A DNA stretch of 64,000 bases from Macrostomum lignano (GCA_002269645.1 NIVC01003755.1:1-64000); one strand, 5' to 3'. Positions 11,046-62,231 are shown, counted from the stretch's first letter. Notes: generated by a model not told the origin, from the letters alone. Made by a program: numbers and translations.

Positions 11046-11134
11046 TGGTGTCACTGATTTGCCTGCTCAATTTGCATTGAATTCTTCAAACTGGCTGTGA
11101 TCTTGCTGGCGTGTGTTCCATTTTATTTATGAGA

Positions 11135-17200: not shown

Positions 17201-17625
17201 AGAGTGACACATGGAGAGTCAGAGGGTGGGGAGTGGCACATGGAGGGTCAGGGTGGAGAGTGGCACATGGAGAGTCGGAGGGTGGGGGAGTGGCACATGG
17301 AGAGTCAGAGGGTGGGGGAGTGTCACATGGAGAGTCAGAGGGTGGGGGGTGGCACATGGAGAGTCAGAGGGTGGAGAGTGGCACATGGAGAGTCGGAGGG
17401 TGGGGAGTGGCACATGGAGAGTCAGAGGGTGGGGGAGTGTCACATGGAGAGTCAGAGGGTGGGGGAGTGTCACATGGAGAGTCAGAGGGTGGGGGAGTGG
17501 CACATGGAGAGTCAGAGGGTGGGGAGTGGCACATGGAGAGTCAGAGGGTGGGGGAGTGTCACATGGAGAGTCAGAGGGTGGGGGTGGCACATGGAGAGTC
17601 AGAGGGTGGGGGAGTGGCACATGGA
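14215..17625. repeat. G-rich minisatellite, 27-30-bp unit (ggagagtcagagggtggggagtggcacat) with higher-order periods of 349 and 438-439 bp
   Basis: Tandem array. Identical spurious ORFs recur at 14296/14645 and 14442/14791 (349 bp apart) and at 15707/16146/16584 (439 and 438 bp apart). Confidence 0.96.
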
Positions 17626-19934: not shown

Positions 19935-20382
19935 TAGTCAAGCATGGGGTCACGCAGCATCTTCATGTCGAGCGAGGGCCACGCAGCATCCTCTTGTCGA
20001 GCAAGGGGTCACGCAGCATCCTCTTGTCGAGCATGGGGTCACGCAGCATCCTCTTGTCGAGCATGGGATCGCGCAGCATCCTCTTGTCCAGCAAGGGGTC
20101 ACGCAGCATCCTCTTGTCGAGCATGGGATCACGCAGCATCCTCTTGTCCAGCATGGGATCACGCAGCATCCTCTTGTCGAGCATGGGATCCACGCAGCAT
20201 CCTCTTGTCCAGCAAGGGGTCACGCAGCATCCTCTTGTCGAGCATGGGATCACGCAGCATCCTCTTGTCGAGCATGGGATCACGCAGCATCCTCTTGTCC
20301 AGCAAGGGGTCACGCAGCATCCTCTTGTCCAGCAAGGGGTCACGCAGCATCCTTTTGTCGAGCATGGGGTCACGCAGCATCG
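19935..20382. repeat. Minisatellite, 30-bp unit (agcatggggtcacgcagcatcctcttgtcc), copy 1
   Basis: Visible tandem array; same unit as 26572-27052. Confidence 0.95.
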
Positions 20383-21057
20383 GCATCGCGTTAGAAGTCG
20401 ATAGTAAAAAGGCGCCTAGAGTAATACGGAGTGTCGCATTTTTTTATTAGCTACAGGGCATCAAACAGGCATCAAAATGTAGCTGATACAATTTACAATA
20501 AGTAGATTGATATAAATAAGGACAAAGGCTTACCAATTAGCAAAAGCGACAACAGGCAATTTTGTAGTGGCTGATGAGCCATGATCGTCTGTCTAAATGG
20601 ATAGTTAAACCGAACGAATATAGTTTACTAATTGGCTTAACAGTTATTATCAACTGATTGAATCGGTGGTTAAAAAATGTTGTGAGGCACGGACCAGACA
20701 AAGCGCCTTCTCGCTTTTATAGTCGCTTTAGAGCAGCGGTTCTGTACTGTTGGTCGACTTCTATATCTATGGCACTGCCGAAGCCATAGACGCTAATACG
20801 AGCAAAGTAGACAAATTGTACCATGACTACGTGGCTATCGGGCGGGCTGATATTCGATTATTGCCATAGACGATTTCATTTTGGCCCGAAAAGTCGCGCC
20901 GATGATGGATTTTTTCCTTTATTCTTTCTCTATAGTTGAACTGTATAGTTTCTCACTAAATCATTATGTCTATGGTTGAAATGCGAGGGCTTCGCCCCCA
21001 CACCCCCATGCCCATACCAGTGAGCATTCACTGAAAAATCGATAATGATGGATTGAC

Positions 21058-21222
21058 AATTAGCAATCTGGAGCGGAAACGAGTTTTACCACATGAGGCC
21101 ACGTAATTGTAAAGAATAAGGAGCCAGCACTGAATGTCGATGGCTCTGTCTGACTCTGTCTATGCTAGCCTGGCCTCATCAGATAAAACTGAAAAACTCG
21201 TTTCCACTCCAGGTTGCTAATT
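21058..21222. mobile_element. MITE-like element with 30-bp terminal inverted repeats
   Basis: aattagcaatctggagcggaaacgagtttt (21058-21087) versus aaaactcgtttccactccaggttgctaatt (21193-21222): inverted match with 2 mismatches; no clear TSD. Confidence 0.6.
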
Positions 21223-23935
21223 ATAGAACTCCTTGTCAACGCCTCTAGTTCGGTCTCCTCGCTACGCGCACTCGTGCCATAGACGTTAACAACACGTAAA
21301 AAAACAATTTGTGATACTCTAATTATTGATATACAAACTCAAAAGCCTCTCTCTATTTTGGCTATGGACATCCATTGTCTTCATGCTGATGCTTAATATG
21401 AATGAAGAGGAGGTTTGAAAGATTCCTCGGTTTGGGTTAGGGTTACATTTTACACACATAAGAGGGTTTAAAAATCTGGAGAGGAACAGATATCACACGA
21501 GCTACAGTACCATCATGCAGCCAAGAAACTGTCTGGAGTAACCATATCTTGATTGTCGAGAGGTCACAAGTTGATGCCCTTCTTCAACGGCAAACCGGCG
21601 CGAGGAGCGCATAAATGGAACAGCAAATCGAGGAACAGTCTATTGAAGATGACGCGTTTGTGAAGTAATTTACCAAAATGACTTCATTCAACTGACTGTC
21701 TGGTTTAAACTGGACATTAAACTAAATTCGAGATGCGTGTTTACTTTTGTCTCATCGAATTATCCACGTAATTTAGAGATCCCAGAGACCATCGGGACAC
21801 GATTTTAAGAAAATCTCGTTTTAGGAGCTGATCTTCTCTAAAATTTGATGCTTTCAATCTGTGATTTAAAATATGCTTCATTTAATGGTCAATGGAAGGT
21901 TAATAAGAAGCGAGATTTTAAGTTTCAAGATCAAGGTCATAAGTGTGCATAGCGCACGAGTGGCAATTTGGCGATTAACTTAAAATTCGCTTCATGTTAA
22001 CTACATTGATTGCATTGTCTATGATCGAAACCGGATTGTCAGTTAATGACCAGCCATTAGGCAGAGGTTATTACCGTGATGGGAAATTTCGATTAATGAG
22101 GCACTAAAGCACGGCTGGGAGTCGCGCGCACGAGTGTCTATGGGCGTGGCTACACGACCAAGCCGTGCTTTAGTTACTGGTACATTGTGTTTTCTGTTCG
22201 TGCATCAATGCCTCCTTAAGATTTTCTTATTTTGCGTTTTGTCTATGGTAGTGTTCAGCGCCGTGCCGGGGGCGGAGCCCCCACATAAGCTCGCTAAAAT
22301 TGAATATTCAGAAAAGTGTATGTATATACTGATGTCTATGGTATAAACTACGAGTCGTAAATGATTCATACTGTTTCATTTTTACCAGACTACCATAGAC
22401 TGTCTTACGAAACAGTGCTATACAGATAGTGAATTCAGGAATGGAGAAAGGACTTCTCAGTTGACTGACGAGCTGTAAAATGACTACGACCCGGCTTCTT
22501 CATTGGGACGCTTTCCCTGGAGGAATGATAAGTGGACTTACTGGCGCCGAGATCGAGAAGTACATAGATGATTTAGACTTGAAGAAAGCTGCTGAAGCAC
22601 TTTCTCTCGAGGATGTTGATCAAGTGTGTCACATTGGAACAGTTGAACAAGGAGTGTTGCGTGGCCAGTTCCGAGTGTCAAGAGAGGAGCTCAGTAGAGC
22701 GACTGAATGACTTCATCGACGCGAATGGATCCATTCAAGTTTGACATCGCGAAGTGTGAACGCTCTGCGTTAGCGTATGTGCTACGCAATGGCGTATGTA
22801 AATTTCAATCAATGTCTGTTTTTTAGTCTGTCTGTAAAATAAAACTCAAATCGTTCCTTTTTTCCTGAAGCATGACCAATGGACTTGTCTTGCTTTCTCG
22901 AGTTACATTTAAACTCAAACGCTTGAAATTGGCACCTCATAGCACGACAAAAGCTGTGCTCATGGTGTCAAGAAGTTGAGTAGCATAATTTTCATGAGTC
23001 AGTTTACATGGATAATATAGTGTATCGTATATGTATAGATATGACGAAACAGCTACGCTAACAGCTGCAATGTCAGTCAGCTTCCTGAACCAAAAATTCA
23101 AGCCAATTTTCTTCTGCCTACAGGTAACCTCAGCATGCGAATGGCTAATAAATAATTAATGAAGCCAATCAGGCATTGCTGAAGAACGCAAATCCCGCAG
23201 AAGCAACACACTGCGCCGCCACAAGATTTCTCGGCGATTTTAGCTAAACAAAGTACTGGGAATCTTGCAAATTGGCCAGCTACTGAAATTGCCTGCATTT
23301 AAGCTAAGCAAATATTTGAGAAGAAGTTTGTCGATGAATTCGAAGCTGTCATGTGCATACAGTAGCTTAGTTTTTTCGCGAGTTTTTCTGAAACTTCGTC
23401 TCAGCTGCCACCTACCAGATGCAGTCTTACAAGAATAAGCTCGTGCACGAAGATTAATCTGGGCTTGCGCCATTCTCGCCCACGAGGGCCAACAACCAAG
23501 GCACAGATCGAGCGTGTACATGCTGTACCCGACGATTAGAAAGTCAGGGCCACGCTGTACTTCTGTGTGAGCGAGTCTGTCCGCGCTCAGGGGTCAGCAG
23601 AATGGACAGGACGGCTTGTTGTGCAGCTCAATTGACTCGCAAATCTGACTCACAAAGCTCACAAGGATGTCAGAGGGGATATTAACCTCCTTTTTACCTT
23701 TCCCTGAGGCGTTATATTGTTGCACACTTCTGCGACACAGTGGCTCTCTCAGTACCAAAATCCTTCGAAGGCTGCTCCAGTAGACGGATGAAACTCCGCA
23801 AAGCACTAGGCCTATTTCATTGCAAGAGTTTCTTTAAAGAGTTTCAAGTGTGTCCGAAAAAAGTTTTAGCTACTCTGTACCCATTTACTTCGTGTCCAAC
23901 GGGACACCTGCGTTATTTAAGCCATTATTGCAGTA

Positions 23936-25505
23936 TTCCAAACGATTCCAAACGAATTATTCCAAACGATCTGAGGCTGCCGCCGGAGACGCCGTTGCCG
24001 GCAGAGGAGAGTTTTAATGCAGCCCCAGTCAGCACAGCCGACGTTGTGAGGCTCGCCCAACAGTCACCGGGCGGGAAAGCGCTGGGTCCGGACGAGGTGC
24101 CCATCGAGGCGCTGCGACTCCACTGTGTGGCCAGCGAGGTCGCCAGTGTGATGAACCGCGTGCTTTGCGGTGAGGCGGCACCCAACGAATGGACCACGGC
24201 ACACATCGTCGCTATTCCGAAGAAGCCGTGCACCACGCGGCTTGAGGAGCACAGAGGTATATATGCCTGCAGTCCTGTGCTGTGAAGCTGTTCAACCGGA
24301 TGCTGCTATCGCGGTTGCAGCCCGTGCTGGATCCGTACTTGCGGCCTGAGCAGAACGGGTTCCGGCCCCATCGTGGCACAATGGCGCAGATCCTGGCTCT
24401 TCGCCGAGTCATCGAGGAAGCGCGGACCCGCCAGTCAAGCCTGATTTCTCTCTTTGTTGAATTCAGGAAGGCTTTCGACTCGGTCGTGAGGGCCGTGCTC
24501 CCAATGGTGCTTCGTGCGTACAACGTGCCAGAGCAGCTGATCTCCGCCGTCATGGCGCTGTATCACGGCAGGAACGCTGCTGTGCTGAAATCGGACGGCC
24601 TGTCGGATTTCTTTGAGACATCCTCTGGGGTGCTTCAGGGAAATACGCTTGCGCCGTTCTTGTTTGTCCCACGACGGCTTCCTGTTGCAGCGACGCGTGG
24701 GTCGACGTCAACCGGAAAGGCGGCTTAGCATTCTGGGCTACGCCGATGATCTCGCCCTGCTGTCATCGACCGTCGAGGGCGCCCAACGCCAGCTGGACCG
24801 GCTGGTGAGCGTTGCGGCGAGTGTCGGCCTGGTGGTCAACACGCAGAAGACCGTCGTGCTATGCGTGCCGGACGACACCGAGGCTGCAATTTTCTGCCGA
24901 GGCGCGGACGGGCAGGTGACGAAGCTTCCGTGCTGTCAGCAGTTCGTCTACCTCGGTGGTCTGGTGCCTGACGTTCGCAAGGATCTGAGACGTCGCCGTG
25001 GACTTGCCTGGGCTGCCTTCCGTTCCGTGAGGGTTGTCCTGCAGTCCGAGGCCCTGCCCGACCGCCAGAGGGCGGCGTTGTTCCAGGCGGTGATCGAGAC
25101 CGTCCTGTTGTACAACGCCGAGACCTCGACGCTGACGGACTCGCTCGAACAGCTGGTCGATGCGGCGCACGCTGGCCGGCTGCGCGCCGCCTTTAAGACC
25201 GGCTACGAGCGAGTCACCAATGCGGCACTCTATCGCCGCACTGGCCTGTCCCGCCCCAGCGAACTGTTGCGCCGTGGGAGACTCCAGCTAGCAAGCAATT
25301 TCATCCGAGCAGATTCGTACTGCCCACAGCTGGTGCAGGTGCTGCTGCTGACGCTGCAGGCACCCTACCGGCGGGGGCAGGCGCGCACTCGGCGTTTCGT
25401 TCGGACACTGCCGGCGGTGCAGCCTACGTTCGCGCCCAGGCCTTGAAACGCGCCTTGTGACGTTGTCTGCTAACTGATTGACAACGTATTTTGTTGTTGT
25501 TGTTG
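23936..25505 (+). mobile_element. 5'-truncated RTE-clade non-LTR retrotransposon (RT with frameshifts), (TTG)n tail, 10-bp TSD
   Basis: GKALGPDEVPIE, IVAIPKK, KLFNRMLLSRL, EQNGFRPHRGT, VEFRKAFDSV, GVLQGNTLAPFLF, LGYADDLALL, FVYLGG. Tail ttgttgttgttgttg at about 25490-25505. TSD tattgcagta at 23926-23935 and 25506-25515. Confidence 0.93.
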
Positions 25506-25806
25506 TATTGCAGTAACATTTCCAGAAGCTCATTTTAAAGTTAGACGATTCGCTAAATGTTGGTTAACAAAAAAATAGCAATAACCAGATTCAATATTCA
25601 GTGGCAATAACCAAGTTTAGCAGTCTTATTACATGTAGATACGCAGATATGTAATTTTCCTGATAAAAATCTTGCGTGTTTCTCGTTGCTTCACATCCGC
25701 AAGCCAAAGTTTCCTTCAAGGCATGCATTATTTGTAGAAAGTGTGCGTTGAAGAATGGAAAGTTATTCTGAGCTGAAACCTGAACACTTCCATGATCTAA
25801 AATATT

Positions 25807-26096
25807 AATAATAATAATTGATTACAACTGCCCTGATGGCCAGATGAGCAACCGACAGCTCAACTGGCAGCTCATCTGAAGGCTGCGTACGGCTGTTCAG
25901 TCCAAGGACTGGGTAGTCGCCACACACCCTCAATTACCCCAGCTAATGCTGGCACCCATTTTACAGCTGGGTGAACTGAAGCAATGCAGAGTTAAGTGTC
26001 TTGCTCAAAAACACAAATTTTTCCGAGTGGGTCGAAAATCGAACCCCCGACCTTTCAGTCGCTAGTAGGACGTTCTAACCACTGGGCTACAGCGAC
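25807..26096 (-). mobile_element. tRNA-derived SINE with CORE-like domain and (ATT)n tail, copy 1
   Basis: Minus strand: box A tagcccagtgg, box B ggttcgattt, then ttgagcaagacacttaac...cccagctgtaaaatggg and an (att)n tail. Homologous to 62429-62733. Confidence 0.85.
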
Positions 26097-26571
26097 TTTA
26101 TGCTTTAAGATACTCCACGAGTACAAAGCGAGTCCGCCCTAGCAGGAAGTAGGTACTCCAACCCATCACCTCTGGACCAGTAGGCGTGAAAATGGAACGC
26201 TTTTAAAGAAAATATTTTTTTGCATTGCGCCACCTGAGATTTACGTAATCAGCGTGGGTTAACTTCGAATAATCAGTAACAGCCTCGCCCAGTAATGAAA
26301 ATCTAAGTTCGAAGAAAATATGCGATTTGCTACTCTCTGGCTGAGAACAAGTGCGAACAGCACTGAGAGCCAGCTTTGTAATTTCCAGCAGGTGTGAAAC
26401 AGTTTAAAATAGGAACGAGTGGGAATCGATTCAGGCCGAAAAGTGTCTAATTCGCTCGACATCCCAGGAGATCTATGGAACCGATTAAAAGCTACAAGCC
26501 AGTAAAAGTACATTCTTGGTGTCGACTAGACCAAAACAGTTGCTCGCATCAGAGTAGAACAAATCTTCTAG

Positions 26572-27052
26572 TCCAGCATGGGGTCACGCAGCATCCGCTT
26601 GTCCAGCATGGGGTCACGCAGCATCCGCTTGTCCAGCATGGGGTCACGCAGCATCCGCTTGTCCAGCATGGGGTCACGCAGCATCCGCTTGTCCAGCATG
26701 GGGTCACGCAGCATCCGCTTATCGAGCATGGGATCACGCAGCATCCTCTTGTCGAGCATGGGGTCACGCAGCATCCGCTTATCGAGCATGGGATCACGCA
26801 GCATCCTCTTGTCCAGCATGGGATCGCGCAGCATCCTCTTGTCGAGCATGGGGTCACGCAGCATCCTCTTGTCCAGCATGGGATCGCGCAGCATCCTCTT
26901 GTCGAGCATGGGGTCACGCAGCATCCTCTTGTCCAGCATGGGGTCACGCAGCATCCTCTTGTCGAGCATGGGGTCACGCAGCATCCTCTTGTCGAGCATG
27001 GGGTCACGCAACATCCTCTTGTCCAGCATGGGATCGCGCAGCATCCTCTTGT
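26572..27052. repeat. Minisatellite, 30-bp unit (agcatggggtcacgcagcatcctcttgtcc), copy 2
   Basis: Visible tandem array; same unit and orientation as 19935-20382. Confidence 0.95.
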
Positions 27053-28009
27053 GTTTTCCAGAGTGACGAGCGGTTGAAGCCTGAGCTGCAAAGATGCATC
27101 CTAAAAAGTAGCAAGGCAAAATGCGGTTATGTTTCCCGGAGGCTAAAAGTGCAATATAAAAGGCCGATGAAAATTCGACATACCGAGCAGCAGGAACAGT
27201 ACCCAGGAAGGCAGCAGTCGTTGAACCATGATTCCAAAGATATTCGACGACTTCAATTACGCTTCAGAAGAACTGTCTGCTTCAATGGGCCGAGCAGTCT
27301 GTCGCGATCTGGGCAAGATTAAGTAGTCTCGAGAGCGTGGGAAAGTCAAGATGTTTTCGAGCTGTCGTGGAGCAGCTTATCACCCAGATGCAGCAGCTTA
27401 ATGTTAGCAGTGTGATAAAGGTGTTGATTGAGAAAGACGGCCTAGCAGGTGGGGCAAACAGCGGGCCAAAATCAAACAGTGCACCGCGTCAGTCCAGCAT
27501 TGGCTGGCTCTCTTTAAATAATGTCAATGAAAACAGGAGTGCGATGGGGATGGGGAATAGAGGCCCAGGGTCGATTGTCCAGCAGCCAATGGCGGGCCGC
27601 TCCCCACCGAGCTGACAGGTCGGCCAGCCATAGGCTGTCGCAGGCGGAGCTCGAAAGAATTGTTAAATTGAAAATTTTTAAACTCAAGACTGCATTCGAT
27701 TCGAAATTAGATTTCGACATCAAAACACTGTTAACTACAATAGGAAAACAGTAATCAGTATACTTGTCTCAGTTTCAGCCTAAATTTGCTAGAGAACAAA
27801 GAGGCTAAAAATGTAGCAAATAGTGGCCAAAAAGTCTTAGTAAGACAGAGATAGGAATAACTTAATTAATAATTATTCCCAATTGGCATTGTAGCCAGCA
27901 TTACTGTGCGCATTTTGGACACTCGTTTAACAACAGCAGCCAATGGAAATGATGGAGAATGTTCACAATATTCAACATACCGATATGTATCGACCATCAG
28001 TGGATTAGC

Positions 28010-29145
28010 TACCAAACTTACCCTTTATATTCAGCGGATTATCTACCAGCTTTACCCTTGATATTCAGGGGATTATCTACCAGCTTTACCCTTGATATTC
28101 AGCGGCTTATCTACCAGCTTTACCCTTGATATTCAGAGGATTATCTACCAGATTTACCCTTGATATTCAGGGGATTATCTACCAGCTTTACCCTTGATAT
28201 TCAGCGGATTAGCTACCAGATTTACCTTTGATATTCAGCGGATTATCTACCAGATTTACCTTTGATATTCAGCGGCTTATCTACCAGCTTTACCCTTGAT
28301 ATTCAGCGGATTAGCTACCAGATTTACCTTTGATATTCAGCGGATTATCTACCAGATTTACCTTTGATATTCAGAGGATTATCTACCAGATTTACCCTTG
28401 ATATTCAGCGGATTATCTACCAGATTTACCCTTGTTATTTAGCGGATTATCTACCAGCTTTACCCTTGATATTCAGCGGATTATCTACCAGATTTACCTT
28501 TGATATTCAGAGGATTATCTATCAGATTTACCCTTGATATTCAGGGGATTATCTACCAGCTTTACCCTTGGAATTCAGCGGATTATCTACCAGATTTACC
28601 CTTGATATTCAGCGGATTATCTACCAGATTTACCCTAGATATTTAGCGGATTATCTACCAGATTTACCCTTGATATTCAGGGGATTATCTACCAGATTTA
28701 CCCTTGATATTCAGGGGATTATCTATCAGATTTACCCTTGATATTCAGGGGATTATCTACCAGCTTTACCCTTGGAATTCAGCGGATTATCTACCAGATT
28801 TACCCTAGATATTCAGCGGATTATCTACCAGATTTACCCTTGATATTCAGGGGATTATCTACCAGATTTACCCTTGATATTCAGGGGATTATCTACCAGA
28901 TTTACCCTTGATATTCAGCGGATTATCTACCAGCTTTACCCTTGATATTCAGCGGATTATCTACCAGATTTACCCTTGATATTCAGGGGATTATCAACCA
29001 GATTTACCCTTGATATTCAGCGGATTATCTACCAGATTTACCCTAGATATTCAGCGGATTATCTACCAGATTTACCCTTGATATTCACCAAATTAGCTAC
29101 CAGATTTACCCTAGATATTCACCAAATTAGCTAACAAATTTACCC
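28010..29145. repeat. Minisatellite, 34-bp unit (attcagcggattatctaccagatttacccttgat)
   Basis: Visible 34-bp period. Confidence 0.95.
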
Positions 29146-32900: not shown

Positions 32901-35900
32901 TAGGTCGAAATGTACATTTGGATTCTCTGACTTCGGGAGTGAGGTGGGTCGCTGTATACATTTGGATTCTCTGACATCGAGAGTGAGGTGGGTCGCTGTG
33001 TACATTTGGATTCTCTGACTTCGGGAGTGAGGTGGGTCGCTGTGTACATTTGGATCTCTGTCCTCCGGAATGAGGTGGGTCACTGTGTACATTAGGGTTC
33101 TCTATCCTTACCTTGTGCGTGTCACAAGAAATGCTGGTCACACCAGGCACGCGGAAGTCGACTGGCTCTAGCGGGAAACCGGCCTGTTCCATGAATGGCA
33201 ACAGAAAGCCGCCAAGGCAGGCGTCAACGTGGACTGGCACGCCGTATTTGAGGCCCAGCTAGAGGGTTGGGCGGTGGACATCATTAAGGACGGAATACGT
33301 ACGGATACAAGCAAAATTTCACGTATTCGATCGGCTTTCGATGATTTGCACGAAATTGTTTTATTATACATACATGCGGTTTCATAATACATAATTCACA
33401 GCTAATGACCCTAGGGGACAAGTTTGCTCCCTCACTGCAGTCAGCATTTTTCCCTCGTTATTTATGCAGAAAATGCGTCAGCATAGAAAATAAAACTCTT
33501 AAATAAATTCGGTAACTAAACAAACCAGATGGCCTCAGATTGGACACACAGGAATTCCACCTACTCAATTCCAATTAAGTATGTTTTGCGTGGCAAGCTA
33601 AATTACTGCCTTCGAGGTATAAAAGCTTGAAGCTAAATTTTCCAAGCAGAAACTGCTTTCCGGATTGCGTCTGAGCGCGCATATCGAAGATAGCTGGGAA
33701 GGCTGCATAAGCGCGCAAGCGAATGACAGACAGCAGCAAAAACTGAAAGCTGCAATTTTCGTCGCTTTTTACATCAATAATGTGATTTGATAGCTCAATG
33801 AGGACTCTGGATTTTGTACTCAAACCAATCTTACTCTAATTTCCACTGGACCCTATAAAAATGCGCGCTAACGACAAAACCCCAGATAGAGCAAGGGAAT
33901 CGCCTGAGCCTAAGAATGAATAGAAGAAGTTAGAAGTTAAGCAGCCACTTTGGACAGGAGTTCTCGATTTAAACCTGTTGACACGGTTGTTAAATACTTG
34001 TAGCCCACTTACATGTACTGCGCTTACTAATGACAAAGATCGCTTAACAGAACTTTATTTATTGTTACGTTACTCTTGCAGGTGCTTATTCGACATTTTT
34101 GAGTCACGTGAAGTTCTAATGGACGCCACTAACGCGAGTCAAAACTGTATGCTTATTGGTTATAACTAAACAAAGTCAGTTTTTAGTGGCATTAGTCGAC
34201 TGTAGACGTTCCCAAGTAGAGTAAAAACACTGCCAGTACCAACACAATGATGTTTTAAGGGCTCAAGAAAAAAGCAACGAGGCCCGGAGGATAGAAATGT
34301 AATTAGGAAACATCTGCTACTGTCAAAGGATTTGACAACTGTGCAGAAGACGCAGCGCCTAGTTAGAAAGATCATCGGCTAACTAGAAAGTAGGAATTTT
34401 TAGTAAAACTAGGCGGCTAGCACTCAAGTTGTTCAAATTAAAAATTGATTGTCTTCAAATGAGGTTAGAAATCTCCTAATCTCTAAGAGAAAAAAGGGGG
34501 CAAATCCGATTATTCGGTAAAGACATTGAAATAGAGTGCAGACTAACTCGAACGTCCGCAAAAGCACCGAAAGAAGACGAACGGAAAGAGGTCGACAATC
34601 GGTAGGATGTTAACCAGCTTCACAGGACAGTGAGAGGGTCGCATTGATTGCTCTTAAGATAATGCTTCTAGTTTAAAGACGTTGAGAATTTAGCGATGGT
34701 CAAGCAAAAAAATGTGCCAAAGAGGCAGAGACGATTATATTGGTAAGGCTCAGTCTATGGCTCATGGCTCATCTTTCGTTTCGGTCTATGGCTCATCTCC
34801 TAGTATCAGGCGATTCTTTGTATGTAATCCACGGCATGTGCGACTCCGGCGGAGATAATGGGTGGTTAGACGAAGGTCGGAACTCAGGATAATGGGTGGG
34901 GGCACGAGTGTGCTAAATTCAGCAACGCCTAGATCACGAGTGCGCGTAGCGCACGAGTGTCTATGGTGTTGCTGAATTCAACGCACGAGTGCCCCCACCC
35001 ATTATCCTGAGTTCCGACCTTTGTCTAGCTTCATTGTCGCTCGGAAGTACCATAGACAAAATATTTGGTTGAACCTGTATGGCCATAGGCTGCTTATCAT
35101 AGTTTTTGGCCATAGACTGTTTTCAAAGAAGAAAGGCACAGAGGAGAGAGAGGGTGGAGAAAATGAAAGCTCTCAAATAACCCTGCTACAAGAAAAGCAT
35201 CATGGCAGACCAAGTGCATCTGATTAACTGGGCTAACTTGCCGATTAGTTGTCTCTCTGGTGTCACACGCTCCGAAATGGATTTTATTTCAATGCTATCG
35301 ACTTCGGGAAACGACTTCGCAGTTGACGAAGACCTAGCCACATTTATCAAGTACATCGAAGAGGGAGGAGCAAGTGACGAATTGCCGTTGCTACCGGATG
35401 AAAATGAAGACGTGGAAGAAGTCTCATGCATGACCGAAGGACCGGCAGTGCCGCTCGATATAACTGAAACGATGGCACGCGAAGAAGTTGCAAGTTTGCC
35501 GAGCAAGACTCGGGAGCAGATGTTGGCATACGGCTCAAGTTTTGTCAACTTTCTAGCTGAGCATGGAGCAGCCGTGCACGAATTGACTACTGCCACGCTG
35601 GCAGAGTTTCTGAGGTATTTCTATTTCAAACTACGACGCGCTGACGGAGGCAGCTATTCGCCGTCAAGCCTAGTCTGCATACGTGCTGGAATCCAACGCT
35701 ATTTGACAATGATTGCGGGACTCAACATTAACATTCTTAGCGGAGAAGAATTTTCCGGAGCTAATCGTCTACTGCGGTTCAAAGTCCGTGAGTGGCAATC
35801 CTCAGGAGGTCAGGTTCGACCGTTTCCTCCAATTGAGGAAGGAGACATGCAAAAGCTGCGTCTTTACTTTGACCGCTCAACTGCCGAAGTTACACAGGAC

Positions 35901-38900
35901 GAGATGCTGTTTCGGCTGCTGTACGGACTGGGAGAACGAGGCAGAGAGCACCTTGCGAGCTTGGAGACAAAGGATTGGTTAGAGAAGAAAAGCGACTCAG
36001 ACGGAAGGATATACTACGCACTATCATCGTCGAAGACCAAGAACAGGACAGCTGATCCGGCGAAAGCCAAAAGAGACGTCGAAATCAAGCAGGCCAGGAT
36101 ATATGACACAGCAATTATAGATGAGTATTTGTCTCTCCTGCCTGGTGAAACGAAGGACAATTCTCTGTTCCCAAGACCGCTAAGAAATTCGCCGACTGGA
36201 GCACGGCGGTTTTGTGCTAAGCAGAAGAGAGGCGTAAACTATCTCAACAACTTTATGAAGACGCTGAGTGGGAAGGCCAAGCTATCCAAAGTTTACACCA
36301 ACCACTGCATCAGGCAAATCTCCTTTGCCAAAGGTGTAGCTTAATTTAGCCTTTAGGCAATGCCTCAAGATGCTTACAATTGTGTAATACCGTTTGCCCA
36401 ATATTTTAGAGTCAGCAGGGTGTGCGACTTAGAAGCAGCTGGGCATTCCATGGCCGACATCATGGCGATAACTGGCCAGAAGTGCGAAAAAACCGTTCGC
36501 CGATATCTCTCAATCAGACGTGACAAGGTGCTAAAGAAGTGCAGCGACGCCGTAACCAAGGTACTGGACATGGAGAAAAACACTACACCTGATTCAAACG
36601 GCCATGTTATTACGAGCGCGTGCCCATCAGCCAGTACAACAGATAGCCCAGCAATCAACACGAGCGTGTGCCCAGTCAACATCCAGAGCTCAACGGTCCA
36701 GGAGGCGGTCAACTTCGCAAACGCTCATCCAAATGGCAAGAACATCTTCGTTATGCAAAACTGCACGTTCAACCAATGCAGTCTGTGAGAATTTATGGGC
36801 AACTGACACTATATGCCAAAATTTCAAGAGTATTTCCTAGTTTTTTGTTACCTTTTTGTTACTGTGCATTGTTGTATTGAATTTTATTGTTACTGTGTGG
36901 TATGCTGTTTTCTAAATAAATTGTGGACATTATCCACAAGTCGTGGACATTATCCAGAACTCAAGGACATTATCCAGAAGTGACGCTAGAACCACAGGCT
37001 ATAAAGTGAAATCAAAGTTGCGACAGTTTTTACCATAGACAAAACATTATCTAAAAGCACTGACTAGCGACAATGGGTTATCTCCGCTATCCATGTATAT
37101 CCATCTCGTTGGTTTGTCTAGGGTAGCAGAGTTACGCTACTGATTATCACCGCTCATTTAATACTGGGGGAATAGACGAGGCGCACAGGCAAAGTGGATT
37201 ACATTCGGTTTCGTAATGCTAAGTTACATGCTAAGTAAACGGACATGCAAAGTTAAAAGCCTATAGAACAAATACGCTCGTATGGGTTGGGCCATAGACA
37301 ACACGCAAATTTTTGACTGAGAACAAGCAAGCCTGCAGTTGGACATCCAAACTTGCCATTTATGGCCGCGAAGTTGATCAGGCTTGCCCGATTCCAGGCT
37401 TGATTGTCTTTCATTCGAATTTCTGAGTCAAAAACTAGCTTGTATCATGGAAAAACCAATACTACATTGACAGTAGAAGTATACCAAGGGGTGGGAATCC
37501 CCCAGTTTTTACTGCGATGGAACGGAACAACGCTAGCTTTTTGTTGCGCACCTTCTCAAACAATAATAAAGTCGTAAGCCATCCGGACCGTCGAGATTGT
37601 CGTATCGTGCAACTCAGCGAGTGTACACTGATTGCTCGATGTACTATTCTTTTGACTTTACTGACCAAATCTTTGATTGAGCGCGGTGACCTTTTCTTCT
37701 GTTCTTAGAGTGTGAAATTCTTTTAAACCCATCGTATTATTAAATATGTAGTGCAGTACATGTATGTACGTTGTTATAAGACCCATAGCGCTGATGAATT
37801 TTTCATGCGTTTATTTTTATCATAATATATAAACATCGGCTTGTAAGCTTACTCGTGCTTAAAAAACTGTAGACTTGTTTCAGAGATAGAGTCAACGATT
37901 CTGCCAGGTCCGGATTTTTTCCACAAGCGCTAGTGTAATTCAGTACACCTCTGTTCGCCAATCAGCACTGCGTCTCAGTGCGGCTTTGTAAAGCCTCGAA
38001 ATTTTATCAGCACATCGACCAAACGTATCTCAACATTGACCAAAGGACTTCGTTGGTCAATTGCATTCACCCAAGCGGAGTTTCTGGACCCTCAACAGGT
38101 GGCACCAGGTGACTATGGAGCGTGTTCTTGAATTTCGTGTGCTTGCTTTGCTCCGTTCTGGCGCAGCAAACAAAATTGTCTGTCGAGGGGATTCCCCCGA
38201 TGGTACTTCGACGGGCGGAAATCCTACTTGGTATTCCTTCTATTAAGGCAAGTAGGCGGTAAGTCTACTTAAGCGAAAGACAAGATAAACAGGAAATACA
38301 AGAACTATAAACAATTAATGCGCTTAACTCGAAATAATTCTCGAAAGATTCGAGAACGAAATTTGGGAGCAGATGTTATTGTAATGAAGGCTTATGAGGT
38401 AGTTAGCGCATTAGTTTATTGACTTAAAACACTGAATCATTTAGTCCTTTACGAACTGAATACTCAAACATACGGTGTGACCCCTGAGCGTTAATTATAA
38501 AGGCACAAGATGAAGTATAGTTTACTATTCTTTCATTATGTCGACAAGTTCGTGTGCGAATAAGCATAATCAATCATTCCACAAACTTGTTTCAGTAACA
38601 GAAAAAAACTTGCATATAAATTAGCAAATTTCTACTTAATGAACAGAATTGAAAGCCGAAAACTGGACGAATCTAATTATAATAGATTTTTTTGCAAGTA
38701 CTTTTCTTTAGACTAATGCTGGACTAACAACTTCTGAGATTCGAGAGACCCGGGACTCTCGAAAGATCATGATTATTTAACGAATTATGTTTTCGTTAGC
38801 AAGGTACCGAGATTACCGTGGAGCATGAAGACGGTCTGGAAAAGTGGCTGTCTAGCCTACAGAAGAATACAAAGAAAAAGTATAGAACAGACCAGAAGTA

Positions 38901-41900
38901 CGGCAGACCCACTCTGTGGGGTGACCAGGTGTGCAATAACAGTAGAATGCCTTCAATAACAGTAGGATGCCTTCAATAACAGTAGAATGCCTTCAATAAC
39001 AGTAGGATGCCTTCAATAACAGCAGGATGCCTTCAATAACAGTAGGATGCCTTCAATAACAGTAGGATACCTTCAATAACAGTAGAATGCCTTCAATAAC
39101 AGTAGGATGCCTTCAATAACAGTAGGATGCCTTCAATAACAGTAGAATGCCTTCAATAACAGTAGGATACCTTCAATAACAGTAGAATGCCTTCAATAAC
39201 AGTAGGATACCTTCAATAACAGTAGAATGCCTTCAATAACAGTAGGATGCCTTCAATAACAGTAGAATGCCTTCAATAACAGTAGAATGCCTTCAATAAC
39301 AGTAGAATGCCTTCAATAACAGTAGGATACCTTCAATAACAGTAGAATGCCTTCAATAACAGTAGAATGCCTTCAATAAAAGTAGGATGCCTTCAATAAC
39401 AGTAGGATGCCTTCAATAACAGTAGAATGCCTTCAATAAAAGTAGGATGCCTTCAATAACAGTAGGATGCCTTCAATAACAGTAGAATGCCTTCAATAAA
39501 AGTAGGATGCCTTCAATAACAGTAGAATGCCTTCAATAAAAGTAGGATGCCTTCAATAACAGTAGGATGCCTTCAATAACAGCAGGATGCCTTCAATAAC
39601 AGCAGGATGCCTTCAATAACAGTAGGATGCCTTCAATAACAGTAGAATGCCTTCAATAACAGTAGGATGCCTTCAATAACAGTAGGATGCCTTCAATAAC
39701 AGCAGGATGCCTTCAATAACAGCAGGATGCCTTCAATAACAGCAGGATGCCTTCAATAACAGTAGAATGCCTTCAATAACAGTAGGATGCCTTCAATAAC
39801 AGTAGGATGCCTTCAATAACAGTAGAATGCCTTCAATAACAGTAGAATGCCTTCAATAACAGTAGGATGCCTTCAATAACAGTAGGATGCCTTCGATAAA
39901 GGTAGTATTGCCAGGCACTCTAAAAACAGCCAAGGAGCACAAGAGAAAAGTCCTCCGTATCTAATTATCTTGCGACTGCCTAAGGGCAAACAAAGCACAT
40001 GCCCAGTTACGCTGACAAATTAGCTGTCGCTAATAACACCTGCTAATTGATGACATTGCCTCTTCGGGGTCTATCCGAGGTTCTCAGTACAAAAAAATAG
40101 TGCTAAAACAGAAGATGCAGACTCGGAGAATTCAGTCTGAGGATGATGATTCATTACTTACTTACAAAATTAGATAGGTGCTAATTAGTTTAATAACTAA
40201 TTAGTAAAAACTTATACATTATATTTTATTATTAGGCTAAAAAAGTGACATTACTTGTTTAAAATAAATTTTACTTTTTCTTTTTAAATCTTTTCTTCAG
40301 TTTAAAAAGCCATTGTCTTGCTTTTAGGAGGCTTGCTCTGGAGCGTTTCTTAGACATCGGGTGCCACTATGGCCGACATGCCGCCCCATCCAGTCAACAT
40401 CCCGTACTTGCAGCGGAATGGCCGCGCCCACCAAGAGCAAAATCGTTTTTTTAATATTTGAATTGAACTCAAGCAACACGAAATATTCCCCTAGAGCTGC
40501 CTATAAGAGCTGTATGCACATCCTGCTGCAGCCACCGGGGCCAATCTCTGTCAACAAGACTCAACAACGCAGATACTTGCAAGTGTTTAAATTAAATAAT
40601 TTCTCTGATACTAACGAGAGCAGCAGAGAAAGTAAACAGTTTGCCAGGGCTCAGGGTCTGACTATGTGTTGTCACAGAGTTTCGTTATAAAATAGTTCGC
40701 GCACCCAAATACCAAAAGCCGGCGCTTACACAGCATTGAAAATGGTGCCCCAGATACCACAGTGGCGCTACCAGCATTCACAGTGGCGCTACCAGCATTC
40801 ACAGTGGCGCTACCAGCATTCACAGTGGCGCGCTACCAGCATTCACAGTGGCGCGCTACCAGCATTCACAGTGGCGCGCTACCAGCATTCACAGTGGCGC
40901 GCTACCAGCATTCACAGTGGCGCGCTACCAGCATTCACAGTGGCGCGCTACCAGCATTCACAGTGGCGCGCTACCAGCATTCACAGTGGCGCGCTACCAG
41001 CATTCACAGTGGCGCGCTACCAGCATTCACAGTGGCGCGCTACCAGCATTCACAGTGGCGCGCTACCAGCATTCACAGTGGCCCTACCAGCATTCACAGT
41101 AGCGCTGCCAGCATTCACAGTGGCGCTAACAGCATTCACAGTGGCGCTACCAGCATTCACAGTGGCACGCTACCAGTATTTACAGTGGTGCGCTACCAGC
41201 ATTCACAGTGGCGCGCTACCAGCATTCACAGTGGCGCGCTACCAGCATTCACAGTGGCCCTACCAGCATTCACAGTAGCGCTGCCAGCATTCACAGTGGC
41301 GCTAACAGCATTCACAGTGGCGCTACCAGCATTCACAGTGGCACGCTACCAGTATTTACAGTGGTGCGCTACCAGCATTCACAGTGGCGCGCTACCAGCA
41401 TTCACAGTGGCGCGCTACCAGCATTCACAGTGGCCCTACCAGCATTCACAGTAGCGCTGCCAGCATTTACAGTGGCGCCCCCCCCAAATATCAACCGTCA
41501 GCGCTCCCAGCAAGCATAGCTCACCTTTGCTATTTCTCCAATGGGATCAATAATTCCATGAGAATAGGATGGCGTGCTGCCGACAAGCTGAAATGAGTAA
41601 TACCACTAATAATTTATGTCAGTTACCATTAAATTCAGCACAGTACATTACACATGCTGCCATCCATTACCATGCAGGTGTTCTTATTAATAGCTGACCG
41701 CATAGCCGCAACGTCCACTCGGCCATCCGGCTTAGATGGCACGTGAACAATTCGAATCCTCAGGTAGTGAGCGGCCTGAGCAGCGAGTTTATGAAATGAA
41801 ACACAAGTTTGATAGGTGAGCTAGGCTGCATAGGTAAAAGGCGGCATACATTATTGCCTCGTCACCTTATTAGTGCCCTTGGCTAACCGGGGGGAGTTAT

Positions 41901-50822: not shown

Positions 50823-51071
50823 TGTTCTGTTGTGGAATTAACGAACGCAGAAACAAGATAGATAATTATCCGGGCGCTCAGTGGCACCAAAAGAAGGGGT
50901 TGGCCAATAGGAGGGCGGCTCGTATATTTATGCACGCGGGGAAGGAAAGTTCTAGAAAGACCGGGGAAGGAAACTTCTGGAACTATGCGTAAACAAGTCC
51001 GCGGTGGAAGTTTCTAGAAACGCTGTCCCCGAACTACCCCTACGCCTCGCATGCCTTTGCAATACACAACA
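50823..51071 (-). repeat. 3' LTR (249 bp)
   Basis: Begins tgttgtg after the PPT on the minus strand and ends agaaca; matches 53245-53493. Confidence 0.95.
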
Positions 51072-51086
51072 TTCTTCCCCTCCTTC
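51072..51086 (-). other. Polypurine tract (gaaggaggggaagaa)
   Basis: Purine run directly 5' of the 3' LTR on the element strand. Confidence 0.9.
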
Positions 51087-51119
51087 AAGGAGTCCAACAG
51101 TCCCCAAGCTTCACTTTAA

Positions 51120-51845
51120 TCAGTCCCAGCGGCAGTTCATGAAGCGTATCGGCGGGTGCCTGGCTCGCTCAGATCGGCGGGGCGCTGCTGTTCTTGCCGG
51201 AGGCTCCGCCGCCGGTGCCGCCGGTGCCGCCGTGCCGGCTCCGGTCGTTGGCGCCGAGTCCACCAGTGGGTCGAACCGCTCTCTCGGCTGCGCCGGGTGC
51301 GGTGTTCGGATCAGCCGCTGCTGGTTCCATCTGGTGCCGTCGCTGAGCTCGACCGCGTGGTGTCCCGCCTGACGGAGCACTTGTAGTGGCCGTGAGAGGC
51401 GGGTACCCAGCTTGCCCTTCTTGGTGGGCCGTCGGATTCTCACCCAATCGCCGGGGTGGAACGTCTCGGGGCGGGCCCTTCGTCTGGCATCGGTGTAGGC
51501 CTTGATCCGCTGCTGCCGCGCCTCGATTTGCTGCCGCAGTGCCTGAGGCGTCGCCTCGGTCATTGTCATTCCCCCTCCGGGAGACAGCATGGTGATCGCG
51601 GTGCGCCACTTCCGACCCAGCATGAGCTCGGCCGGTGACTTGCCCGTCAGGCTGTGCTTGGAGCTCCGGTAGGCAGACAAGAAGTTGGTCACGGCGTCTT
51701 GAAACGGCCTGTTCTCCACCATGGCCGCTCTGATGCTGGCGAGTAGCGACCGATTGAGACGCTCCGTCTGGCCGTTGGTCTGCGGATGGTAGAGGCTGGT
51801 CTTGACGTGCCGGATGCCCTGCTCGGCCAAGAAGTCCGAGAACTC
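51120..51845 (-). pseudogene. Integrase core C-terminal half (no start codon, out of frame with gag)
   Basis: EFSDFLAEQGIRHVKTSLYHPQTNGQTERLNRSLL...FLSAYRSSKHSLTGKSPAELMLGR...FHPGDWVRI. Confidence 0.85.
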
Positions 51846-53232
51846 GCTCGATGATGCCGTCCTTCTCTATCTTGTCGAGTTCGGCACCGACCTGCTCCTG
51901 TCGCATGAGGGGCAGGCGACAGAGTGGCTGCTGGACGGGTCGCGCTGCTGGGTCGACCTTGGGCTGGTGTAAAGCGCCGGCGCAGCATCCTATCGCACCG
52001 CTGAAGGTCGTTGGGTACCGCGCCTGCAAGTCCGCCGTCAAGTCGCTGACCTTCGCGATTCCGGGTGGCTGCCCGCTAAGGTCGACTCGGAAGCCCAGCT
52101 TCTCCATCAGGTCTCTACCGACGATGTTGTCGCCGCCTGGCGCAACGAAGAACCGGTGCTGCATCGCCTTGTCGCCGTAGCGCACCTCCAGCTCGGTGAC
52201 ACCACTTAGCTGGATCGGCAGTCCACCGTAGGCACACAGCTTCGTCGTGGTGGGAGAGGTGACTGCACCTGAGATCCGGTCGGCGGTCTGTCGGGACAGC
52301 AGCGACACCCTTGCGCCGCAGTCCACCATCAGGCTGACAGCGGTCCTGTCCGGTCCGAGTTCCAGCGTCGCCCGGACCTCCCTGTCGCCACCCGGCACTG
52401 CGTAGACTGTGATCACCTCGTCCGCGGCATTGACAGCAGCCTGCTGGCTGCGACAGCAACTCCGGAAGTGGTTCTTCTTGCCACAAGCGTCGCATGTCTT
52501 GCCCTTGGCCGGACAGGGGGTCGTCGGTCCGTGGTCTCGCCCACAGCGTGTGCAGGCGCCGCCGGGTTTGGCCGTCCTGCCAGCTGGTGCTGGGCGGTGC
52601 CTCCCCTTTGCAGCGACCTTCTGGCCCCTCGGCTGTCGGATCGATTGGACGGCTGCCGTGCTCGAGGTTGATGGCGCCATCGCCTTGGCTTCTTTGGAGG
52701 CTTCCTCGATGGAGACCGCGATGCTGAGCGCTTTCGCCAGGTTGAGGTCCTCCACCTTCTCCGTCAGCAGCCTCTCTCGGATTCTGGGGTTACTGGTCTT
52801 CTCAGCCAGCTGGTCTCTGATGAGATCGTCCTGTATCGCGCCGTAGTTGCACAGCTCCGTCAGCTCCCTCAGGGCTGCCACGAAGGTCTTGACGTCCTCG
52901 CCGGGTAGCTGCTGGCGCTGGCGGAAGCGATATCTGGCTACCATCACGTTGGGCTTCTCGCCGAAGATCTTCTCGAGCTCCGCCTTAGTTGCTGCGAACG
53001 TGTCGTTCTCCTTGATTGCTTGGCGTGCTCGAGCAACCCGCTGACCTTCAAATCCAAGCAGATGGAGCAGAAGGCTCCTCTTCAGCGGTTTCGCCTCTTC
53101 CTTCCCTTCGGGCTCCTTGAATTGGGCCGCCTCGTAATAAAATTCAAAGGCCTCAATCCATCGGCTCCATGGTACTGTCGGTGATCCGCAGTTCGCCAGG
53201 AAGGGCGTGGGTGCAGGGATGCTAGCCGCCAT
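51169..53232 (-). CDS. Gag-protease polyprotein with RT N-terminus, fused out of frame at the deletion
   Basis: ATG at 53232 inside the PBS; retrotransposon Gag (RYRFRQRQQLPGEDVKTFVAALRELTELCNYG...IRDQL), two zinc knuckles, aspartic protease, RT start (PVQQPLCRLPL...ELDKIEKDGIIERV), then a non-homologous tail. Confidence 0.85.
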   Translation of the reverse strand: MAASIPAPTPFLANCGSPTVPWSRWIEAFEFYYEAAQFKEPEGKEEAKPLKRSLLLHLLGFEGQRVARARQAIKENDTFAATKAELEKIFGEKPNVMVARYRFRQRQQLPGEDVKTFVAALRELTELCNYGAIQDDLIRDQLAEKTSNPRIRERLLTEKVEDLNLAKALSIAVSIEEASKEAKAMAPSTSSTAAVQSIRQPRGQKVAAKGRHRPAPAGRTAKPGGACTRCGRDHGPTTPCPAKGKTCDACGKKNHFRSCCRSQQAAVNAADEVITVYAVPGGDREVRATLELGPDRTAVSLMVDCGARVSLLSRQTADRISGAVTSPTTTKLCAYGGLPIQLSGVTELEVRYGDKAMQHRFFVAPGGDNIVGRDLMEKLGFRVDLSGQPPGIAKVSDLTADLQARYPTTFSGAIGCCAGALHQPKVDPAARPVQQPLCRLPLMRQEQVGAELDKIEKDGIIERVLGLLGRAGHPARQDQPLPSADQRPDGASQSVATRQHQSGHGGEQAVSRRRDQLLVCLPELQAQPDGQVTGRAHAGSEVAHRDHHAVSRRGNDNDRGDASGTAAANRGAAAADQGLHRCQTKGPPRDVPPRRLGENPTAHQEGQAGYPPLTATTSAPSGGTPRGRAQRRHQMEPAAADPNTAPGAAERAVRPTGGLGANDRSRHGGTGGTGGGASGKNSSAPPI

Positions 53233-53243
53233 CCTCGTCGCCA
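53229..53243 (-). other. Primer binding site TGGCGACGAGGATGG, complementary to the 3' end of tRNA-Ser(GCU)
   Basis: Lies 1 nt inside the 5' LTR; complement CCATCCTCGTCGCCA matches the animal tRNA-Ser(GCU) 3' end as I recall it. Confidence 0.8.
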
Positions 53244-53244
53244 A

Positions 53245-53493
53245 TGTTCTGTTGTGGAATTAACGAACGCAGAAACAAGATAGATAATTATCCGGGCGCT
53301 CAGTGGCACCAAAAGAAGGGGTTGGCCAATAGGAGGGCGGCTCGTATATTTATGCACGCGGGGAAGGAAAGTTCTAGAAAGACCGGGGAAGGAAACTTCT
53401 GGAACTATGCGTAAACAAGTCCGCGGTGGAAGTTTCTAGAAACGCTGTCCCCGAACTACCCCTACGCCTCGCATGCCTTTGCAATACACAACA
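53245..53493 (-). repeat. 5' LTR (249 bp)
   Basis: TG...CA, matches the 3' LTR, flanked by PBS and TSD. Confidence 0.95.
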
Positions 53494-57268: not shown

Positions 57269-57472
57269 TGTTGTGTATTGCAAAGGCATGCAATGCGAAG
57301 GGAAAGTTCGGGGACAAGGGTTTCTAGAAACTTCCACAGCAGGACTTGTTTACGCATTGTTCCAGAAGTTTCCTCTCCCCGTCTTTCTAGAAATTTCCTT
57401 CCCCGCGTGCATAAATATACGATCGAGCCGCCCTCCTATTGGCCAAGCCCTCTTTGGTGCCACTGAGCGCCC
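57269..57472 (+). mobile_element. Diverged solo/partial LTR related to the LTRs at 50823 and 53245, in opposite orientation
   Basis: tgttgtgtattgcaaaggcatgc...tttctagaaacttccac...ccccgcgtgcataaatatacg...ccctcctattggccaa...ttggtgccactgagcgccc aligns to the LTR with substitutions and indels; the last ~50 bp do not align. Confidence 0.85.
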
Positions 57473-62128: not shown

Positions 62129-62231
62129 TTAATCTGATAAGCATTCAGTCAGTCAGCTGGTCGGTCACAGCATTCACGATCCGTTTCCGCAGTTTGACTC
62201 AGACTGATCCTACTATTGTTGGTCTACGCGA

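Follow-up and report, generated by a model that had tools for sequence, protein, structure and literature searches.

A 64,000-nucleotide stretch of Macrostomum lignano DNA (GCA_002269645.1, NIVC01003755.1:1-64000) contains a tyrosine recombinase (YR) gene framed by exact copies of an 8-bp core, CCATAGAC. This whole 64-kb stretch is called the window below, and all window coordinates refer to it. With moderate confidence, we favour the interpretation that the gene belongs to a site-specific, CryptonA-like transposon lineage with the core R-CCATAGAC-W, whose members cluster because integration regenerates the target. The main element appears to be an intact copy of about 2.0-2.6 kb that encodes only a Cre-like YR and represents a macrostomid-type flatworm lineage. 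From its sequence context, CCATAGAC looks like the first well-defined, if putative, recombination site of an animal Crypton.

A short core confined to three clusters

CCATAGAC occurs 21 times in the window against an expectation of 1.85 +/- 1.44, and 0 of 100 shuffles reached 21. All 21 copies lie inside three clusters (18704-22400, 34753-37299 and 59308-59718). Across five loci, cluster DNA carries 33 copies in 8.0 kb, compared with none in the remaining 56.7 kb of the window. A logo built from 36 exact sites reads R-CCATAGAC-W, with A (19) or G (15) at position -1 and A (22) or T (9) at position +1, and the remaining flank positions are variable. Two subclasses recur, namely TACCATAGAC(AAAA), termed TA-type, and GGCCATAGAC, termed GG-type.

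Around the gene, plus-strand copies start at 35050, 35110, 37033 and 37292, at intervals of 60, 1923 and 259 bp, exactly as an earlier note on this DNA had listed them. That note had also described a 14-bp exact outer repeat lacking a target-site duplication (TSD). Both parts of the description hold, in that TACCATAGACAAAA is repeated directly and exactly at 35048 and 37031, and the bases outside these two copies are not duplicated. The parts of the main element, all on the plus strand, are as follows.

35048-35061, plus: left copy of the 14-bp direct repeat TACCATAGACAAAA, TA-type, the distal 5' core (sequence search)
35058-35107, plus: 5' inter-core spacer, with TATGGCCATA as a palindrome and, at 35083, CCATAGGC, a core with one mismatch
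35108-35117, plus: GGCCATAGAC, GG-type, the proximal 5' core; TGT follows, and the ATG lies 84 bp on
35202-36313, plus: YR exon 1, amino acids 1-370 and two bases of codon 371, with an INWxxLP N-terminus, a QRICH1-like N domain, R246, K280 and H368 (open reading frame, spliced translation, alignments)
36314-36409, plus: 96-bp GC-AG intron, donor CAG|GCAAAT, acceptor ttttag|A (homologue alignment)
36410-36788, plus: YR exon 2, stop included, completing R371, with Q394 at the HisII/Trp position, Y403 in RRYL, a disordered tail and a C-terminal NCTFNQC motif
36923-36981, plus: three 20-bp direct repeats, GTGGACATTATCCAGAAGTC, ending 56 bp ahead of the 3' core (TRF)
37031-37044, plus: right copy of TACCATAGACAAAA, the 3' core, beginning 244 bp past the stop
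37041-37299, plus: 259-bp segment whose right end (37290-37299) is a second GG-type core, GGCCATAGAC; a degenerate inverted core lies at 37116

The recombinase gene and its protein

The earlier note had read the gene as an open frame of 496 amino acids. The length is correct, since the spliced translation gives exactly 496 residues, but the frame is not open throughout. The segment 36314-36409 is in frame when unspliced and yet has stop codons, so that the unspliced reading ends at 36344. Homologues run from NHCIR straight into V/L-S/T-R without an insert at this position. Their continuity at HCIR, together with the stop at 36344, therefore identifies a 96-bp GC-AG intron. A canonical GT-AG intron was considered and rejected, as no GT donor restores an in-frame join and the homologue alignment leads to the GC donor at 36314. 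In a related locus from Logan (L006), whose protein is about 50% identical, an intron with a GT donor occupies the identical position and phase.

R246, K280, H368 and R371 are invariant in the YR alignment, and Y403 lies within RRYL, all five being assigned by alignment. An AlphaFold model (nine sequences) gave block pLDDT values of 65-92 over residues of about 90-410 and values of 70-92 over most of them, lower around 241-300 and weak at 281-300. The top Foldseek match is Cre over both domains (1ma7_B, E = 1.2e-8, target TM 0.63, about 330 columns), followed by IntI4, XerA, XerH, the Tn1549 integrase and human QRICH1 (9hjt_H, E = 1.8e-4). By predicted fold, the window protein thus models as a Cre-like two-domain YR. 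A PDB profile search placed it with XerA at E = 3.5e-4. Its relatives P0007-P0010 exceed the cut-off of the Phage_integrase profile PF00589 (27.8-35.9 bits); P0010 also passes that of DUF3504 (48 bits), for which P0007-P0009 are sub-threshold.

The YR is the sole long open reading frame (ORF) between 34.7 and 37.4 kb. No reverse transcriptase (RT), RNase H or methyltransferase ORF was found in that interval, and related contigs of 1.8-2.5 kb carry the YR as their only gene. The Pfam and fold links to DUF3504 and QRICH1 suggest a CryptonA-type affinity. Taken with the lack of a nearby RT, this evidence points to a Crypton-type YR with CryptonA-type rather than CryptonS affinities. The earlier identification of a Crypton-type recombinase is thereby sustained at the level of the class, while the parallel it drew with CryptonS, a stramenopile group, probably gives way to CryptonA.

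A fragment of a DIRS- or Ngaro-type retroelement would offer another origin for such a gene, with the YR as a leftover and the cores as parts of split direct repeats. The interleaved order TA1 (35048), GG1 (35108), gene, TA2 (37031), GG2 (37290) loosely recalls that structure. We regard this origin as scarcely credible, since the interval lacks the three retroelement ORFs, the gene has an intron, the left and right inter-core segments are not homologous, and the Pfam and fold links lead to DUF3504 and QRICH1 instead of DIRS-type YRs.

The core accompanies the recombinase across related loci

The closest matches of the window protein are M. lignano proteins with 64-65% identity. The earlier note had tied CCATAGAC to the YR at one locus, and the association extends well beyond it. 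Of ten close-clade YR loci, eight have an exact core at a distance of 26-146 bp ahead of the ATG, at a chance of about 0.005 per locus. Two of the eight are in the window (the main element and a second, truncated element), two are M. lignano contigs and four come from Logan or JGI, which together represent at least three sources. The six loci outside the window are arranged as follows.

L089, M. lignano: core at 9894, 99 bp ahead of the ATG
L090, M. lignano: cores at 9851 and 11542 either side of the gene, with GGCCATAGAC in common
L001, Logan: GTCTATGGTA at 36 and 1678, either side of a 495-aa gene
L006, Logan: cores at 60 and 150, ATG at 251
L092, Logan: core at 129, ATG at 259
L093, JGI: cores at 9 and 123, ATG at 277

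The two further loci, L091 and L094, show no core in the 5' flank, which is only 78-87 bp long. Direct copies on both sides of the gene occur in three loci, namely the main element (14 bp), L001 (10 bp) and L090 (10 bp). For L001, a circle or tandem assembly was considered and rejected, because the flanks beyond its two cores differ. Within the M. lignano loci (57 kb examined), 11 of 11 sites lie no more than a few kb from a YR.

The second YR element of the window repeats this geometry in another lineage.

22393-22710, plus: 5' remnant of a second YR element, with CCATAGACTGT at 22393, then 79 bp, then a 76-aa ORF beginning MTTTRLLHWDAFPGGMISGL

The remnant (22480-22710) differs from the main element, matches the N-terminus of P0008 (tblastn E = 0.004) and loses its frame after about 260 bp. 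The gap from CCATAGACTGT to the ATG is 79 bp here, compared with 81 bp at the main gene, where CCATAGACTGT starts at 35110.

Two cores ahead of the gene also occur in L006, L092, L093 and L089, with spacers of about 52-110 bp. In the main element, L089, L092 and L093, the spacer includes a short palindrome or a hairpin. The recurrence of this two-site 5' end makes the 60-bp segment of the window, a separate module in the earlier note, more likely part of a compound 5' end and probably not an independent cassette.

Beyond the close clade, the association fades. Among 80 metagenome relatives with 25-37% identity, CCATAGAC is not clearly enriched: about 9 copies would be expected, and about 15 were counted, four of which belong to a single tandem repeat. 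The core is therefore clade-specific. By-eye inspection of L002-L005 and L007 gave apparent ends of about 15 bp resembling terminal inverted repeats (TIRs), together with large 5' hairpins. L005 (Logan ERR9287621) holds two different YR genes in tandem (401-1747 and 2118-2321, 370 bp apart), with TIR-like 17-mers around the first and large hairpins in the flanks. In L093, at 800-870, a YR gene close to that of L092 is broken at about amino acid 175, with GTCTATGG 24 bp past the new stop, which suggests a rearrangement or insertion near a core inside the gene.

The same comparisons bear on the idea that the YR is domesticated or immobile, that is, a host gene or an old fixed insertion, and that the CCATAGAC clusters are an unrelated family of short repeats or miniature inverted-repeat transposable elements (MITEs). 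The intact ORF and the conserved spliceosomal intron would fit such a history, Crypton domestication is well documented (PMC3212892), and the YR of L089 lies a few kb downstream of ATE1, as in the window. We nevertheless judge this explanation quite improbable. M. lignano and other samples have numerous diverged paralogues (44-65% identity), the gene is antisense within an intron, and the position of the core upstream of the ATG is fixed in 8 of 10 loci. The window also contains the truncated copy from another lineage, whose core is arranged in the same way, and neither window gene has P0011, the protein beside ATE1 in L089, as its closest relative. Moreover, the TSDs expected of DDE-type MITEs are missing.

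Accessory repeats, palindromes and the other clusters

Close to the 3' core, ggacattatcca starts at 36925, 36945 and 36965, in agreement with the exact 20-bp spacing reported earlier (TRF: period 20, 3 copies, 87% matches). Each of these repeats contains GGACATTATCCA. By their sequence arrangement they are candidate accessory, arm-type binding sites. Counted together, CATTATCC and GGATAATG occur 7 times in cluster regions compared with 0 in the background, and repeats of the CATTATCC type recur near the ends of relatives; the 3' end of L006, for example, has GGACATTAACC and GGTCATTAAC. Allowing at most one mismatch, ACATTATCC is not enriched window-wide (13 against 14.7 expected); exact CATTATCC alone stands out, in the clusters. 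Two other motifs share this distribution: CACGAGTG, with 7 copies against 1.03 expected, is restricted to clusters, and GGGGGCNNNGCCCCCAC occurs 9 times in clusters and once in the background.

The following regions lie outside the core-bounded gene.

34753-35027, unstranded: left accessory region, with inverted cores GTCTATGG at 34753, 34784 and 34959 and a palindrome at 34867-35027
18704-22400, unstranded: cluster 1, in which 11 exact cores are spread over both strands, together with several degenerate ones, hairpin units and CACGAGTG
59308-59718, unstranded: cluster 3, with three exact cores and several degenerate ones

The attatcc motif that had been noticed in the left flank is present at 34887 (minus) and 34999 (plus), and these two copies form opposite arms of the palindrome 34867-35027, whose arms are 79 nt long. 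The palindrome also holds four same-strand copies of CACGAGTG and one GGATAATG/CATTATCC pair. Copies of CACGAGTG are mirror-placed in both palindrome arms, always on the same strand (34903, 34935, 34952 and 34984; 21955 and 22129; L089 9657-9680). One folded strand would therefore hold tandem G·A mismatches and the other pyrimidine mismatches, and this placement could be a strand-discriminating feature.

Stable folding is limited to some of the units. L089 9623-9714 (z = -12.6), a hairpin unit comparable to the left accessory region, and 34867-35027 fold better than shuffles, as do 59308-59395 and 22334-22400 more weakly. The remaining inverted-core units of the (-)...(+) type fold no better than shuffles. 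Cluster 3 includes an 88-bp unit, GTCTATGG...CATAGAC, with the hairpin GGGGGCAAAGCCCCC, which is also core-adjacent in cluster 1 and L089. In these three contexts, homology around the GC-hairpin module beside the core persists up to the core and is lost no more than 6 bp past it. Self-BLAST of the flanks revealed nearly nothing in common between clusters except this module and the segment 37113-37205, which is about 70% identical to 59662-59570 in inverted orientation. The cluster 1 stretch 21961-22084 looks like a deletion derivative, in that it resembles the two contig ends of L006 placed side by side.

No TSD was found at the GTCTATGG...CCATAGAC units of cluster 3, of window 34784-35057 or of L089 9623-9714, and a DDE-type MITE or TIR transposon was rejected for lack of TSDs at the units tested. 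A Helitron-like reading, based on a hairpin and a CTAG-type end, was likewise discarded, as a Rep/helicase gene is missing and the ends differ in sequence.

A model of core exchange and its alternatives

The favoured interpretation translates into an explicit mechanism. Each element would have a compound 5' end, consisting of a core, a spacer of 52-110 bp, a second core and the 5' untranslated region, and a 3' end with CATTATCC-type direct repeats followed by one or two cores. The recombinase would pair two direct cores and excise a circle carrying one core, which could be re-inserted at another CCATAGAC by conservative exchange. Every integration would leave cores on either side, and existing insertions would therefore be preferred targets. 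Such re-targeting would in turn lead autonomous, truncated and short hairpin-bearing non-autonomous units to pile up in clusters. For the main element, the predicted empty allele is ggaagTACCATAGACAAAAcatta, with one core. We infer core exchange, the circular intermediate, binding at the 20-bp repeats and any current activity from these arrangements.

Several observations weigh against this interpretation. CCATAGAC occurs on both strands inside every window cluster, and simple integration at an asymmetric core does not yield cores on both strands. Inverted copies (GTCTATGG) left of the main element, at 34753, 34784 and 34959, had been left unmentioned in the earlier account. Taking window 35050/35110 as the reference, the cores of L001 (36/1678) and L006 (60/150) point the opposite way with respect to the YR gene, and L001 and L092, which come from one sample, have opposite core orientations. 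In L001 and L006 the reversal also holds against an upstream flank of weak conservation. A core cannot be turned around within its own flank by recombination at that core, so the reversed orientation does not follow from the model.

The ends and the protein add further difficulties. L092 and L093 are co-linear through both 5' cores. L089 has no exact 3' core within 2.7 kb past the stop, just a degenerate inverted one. Positions 13-57 of L006 resemble 34999-35041, outside the first core (score 49 against 27 +/- 5 for shuffles), and the homology of L006 to window 21961-22084 also reaches beyond the cores; the cores may therefore be sub-terminal and not exact ends. The window protein scores 12 bits against PF00589 (E = 0.18), under the 27.1-bit cut-off, and its match to the QRICH1 domain (E = 3.6e-4) is under the Pfam cut-off as well. 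Its fifth catalytic position, usually His or Trp, is Q394 in the close clade and H in remoter relatives.

Part of this pattern would follow if CCATAGAC were a recombinase-binding motif, present several times and in both orientations inside the terminal few hundred bp of a larger element at about 34750-37300, much like the sub-terminal motifs of En/Spm or Ac. Inter-copy pieces would then be spacers, and clusters 1 and 3 would be non-autonomous or decayed elements of this type. Cores on both strands of each cluster, the conserved double 5' site and spacer with its co-linearity in L092 and L093, and the homology of L006 beyond the cores agree with this proposal. So do the core about 25 bp beyond the YR breakpoint in L093 and the stretch 21961-22084, if read as an internal-deletion derivative keeping both end regions. 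Direct core pairs with 10-14 bp of identity nevertheless surround the gene in three loci, and the homology of the GC-hairpin module stops at the core in three contexts. Inter-site segments of different clusters are mostly unrelated. In addition, YRs depend on a crossover site that is defined, and no terminal sequence other than the core proved to be conserved. On balance, we hold sub-terminal binding sites to be a serious but somewhat unlikely explanation.

A more far-reaching proposal, and in our view a doubtful one, treats cores and inverted-core hairpin units as a eukaryotic cassette-type platform. Short non-coding modules and entire YR genes would move independently of one another and in trans, by excision, inversion and re-integration at any core, as an animal counterpart of integron arrays or arrays of integrative mobile elements exploiting Xer (IMEXs), with persistent landing pads. 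Cores would remain exact since recombination would be limited to exact copies. One possible landing pad of this kind lies downstream of ATE1, in the window and in L089. The earlier note had already described integron-like modules, and cores do bound differing segments; the conserved two-site 5' end, the occurrence of both orientations and homology that sometimes crosses the sites leave the modular picture with partial support.

Genomic setting

Returning to the transposon interpretation, the main element sits in a host gene. A tblastn search with human SGPL1 mapped the exons of this gene to the minus strand, between 47332 and 29932. The element lies in the 8.3-kb SGPL1 intron at 33259-41518, antisense to SGPL1, which corroborates the intronic placement given in the earlier note. 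The arginyltransferase gene ATE1 lies at 6860-9830 (about 6.9-9.8 kb) on the plus strand. Rfam and ARAGORN searches were both empty and thus gave no small RNA gene as a target.

ATE1 is located upstream of CCATAGAC clusters and a Crypton YR both in the window and in contig NIVC01002014.1 (L089, 1-2227 / 10001-11350). The window shares no nucleotide similarity with L089 or L090 save one 62-bp module, and the ATE1 exons of the window and L089 are 37% identical. This shared neighbourhood could be a conserved landing pad or a coincidence.

Other repeats are abundant in the window. Minisatellite density is exceptional, with at least 20 long arrays with periods of 17-44 bp, many of them within SGPL1 or ATE1 introns (for example, 7202-8349, 14223-17632, 27997-29145, 38934-39899 and 60535-62129). 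Inside cluster 1, the 30-bp array at 19932-20381 shares 91% identity with another one at 26563-27052. Another repeat, roughly 300 bp long and not related to the CCATAGAC clusters, is found at 25803-26098 and again, inverted, at 62427-62734, 36 kb away, with 88-96% identity. Remains of other transposons, comprising pol fragments of long terminal repeat (LTR) retrotransposons and an RT of the long interspersed nuclear element (LINE) type, are found at 995-3002 (minus), 23740-25446 (plus), 50920-53422 and 57268-57422. A 691-aa gag-pol-like ORF occupies 51169-53244 on the minus strand, with 81-nt repeats at 50920 and 53342 and an inverted copy at 57342. These other elements account for the RT ORFs at 23.7-25.4 kb and 51-53 kb.

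Significance

Cryptons are the least understood class of eukaryotic DNA transposons, and their repeats usually measure 4-6 bp. To our knowledge, animal Cryptons have no defined recombination site, and reconstitution of a Crypton recombinase has yet to be reported. The present family retains an exact core of 8-10 bp across roughly two-fold protein divergence, along with candidate accessory repeats and natural site clusters. This combination makes the model of circle excision and site-specific integration directly testable, and Macrostomum is a tractable laboratory flatworm genus for such work. The core model would also account for the way short unrelated repeats accumulate locally in these very repeat-rich genomes. 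Should the recombinase prove active, it could give a compact new pair of site-specific recombinase and target.

Comparison with known systems

The YR retroelements Ngaro, VIPER and PAT resemble the main element in their bipartite ends, as a TA-type and then a GG-type core lies on each side of the gene. They differ in that the present element lacks an RT and has inter-core segments of unequal length (60 vs 259 bp) and no homology.

Mobile integrons share with these loci a YR and a short conserved core that bounds otherwise unrelated segments. IntI4 is among the fold matches, and some imperfect palindromes with inverted cores (L089 9623-9714, window 59308-59395) resemble attC. Unlike integrons, the clusters have neither cassette ORFs nor an attI or promoter platform, the YR lies inside the array and is itself core-flanked, and many of the segments between cores lack palindromic structure. 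Elements that integrate at dif or att sites, such as CTX-type IMEXs acting via XerCD and tandem prophages, likewise regenerate their target on both sides and stack. Those systems are bacterial and depend mostly on host recombinases and a unique chromosomal site, whereas here the element has its own YR and sites at multiple loci. Integron and IMEX arrays are accordingly to be taken as functional analogies only.

CryptonS elements, an oomycete and diatom group, have TATGG termini and repeats of 5-6 bp (PMC3212892). The core contains CCATA, the reverse complement of TATGG, and the sense strand of L001 and L006 reads GTC-TATGG-TA. The CryptonS group differs in its stramenopile hosts and its own conserved C-terminal region, compared with an animal host and CryptonA-type domain links here. 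The tandem clusters that the earlier note ascribed to CryptonS find no mention in PMC3212892.

The CryptonA group of Crypton DNA transposons (Goodwin 2003; Kojima and Jurka 2011, PMC3212892) offers the closest parallels. The YR is the sole protein and no RT accompanies it, short direct repeats flank the gene, and classical TIRs and TSDs are absent. Relatives have matches to DUF3504 and to the N domain of QRICH1, the animal host agrees, and apparent non-autonomous derivatives occur. A literature search on Macrostomum together with Cryptons yielded no description of the present family. The general Crypton model invokes exchange at short direct repeats common with the target (PMC3212892, PMC13465315), and a 2026 paper describes the termini of fungal CryptonA as poorly conserved (PMC13465315). 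No terminal repeats were reported for animal CryptonA and CryptonI (PMC3212892), whereas repeats of 14, 10 and 10 bp are present here. Further differences from CryptonA are the exact 8-10 bp core kept across loci whose proteins are only 44-65% identical, the presence of more than one core per end, the inverted cores and hairpin units, and the clustering of both sites and elements.

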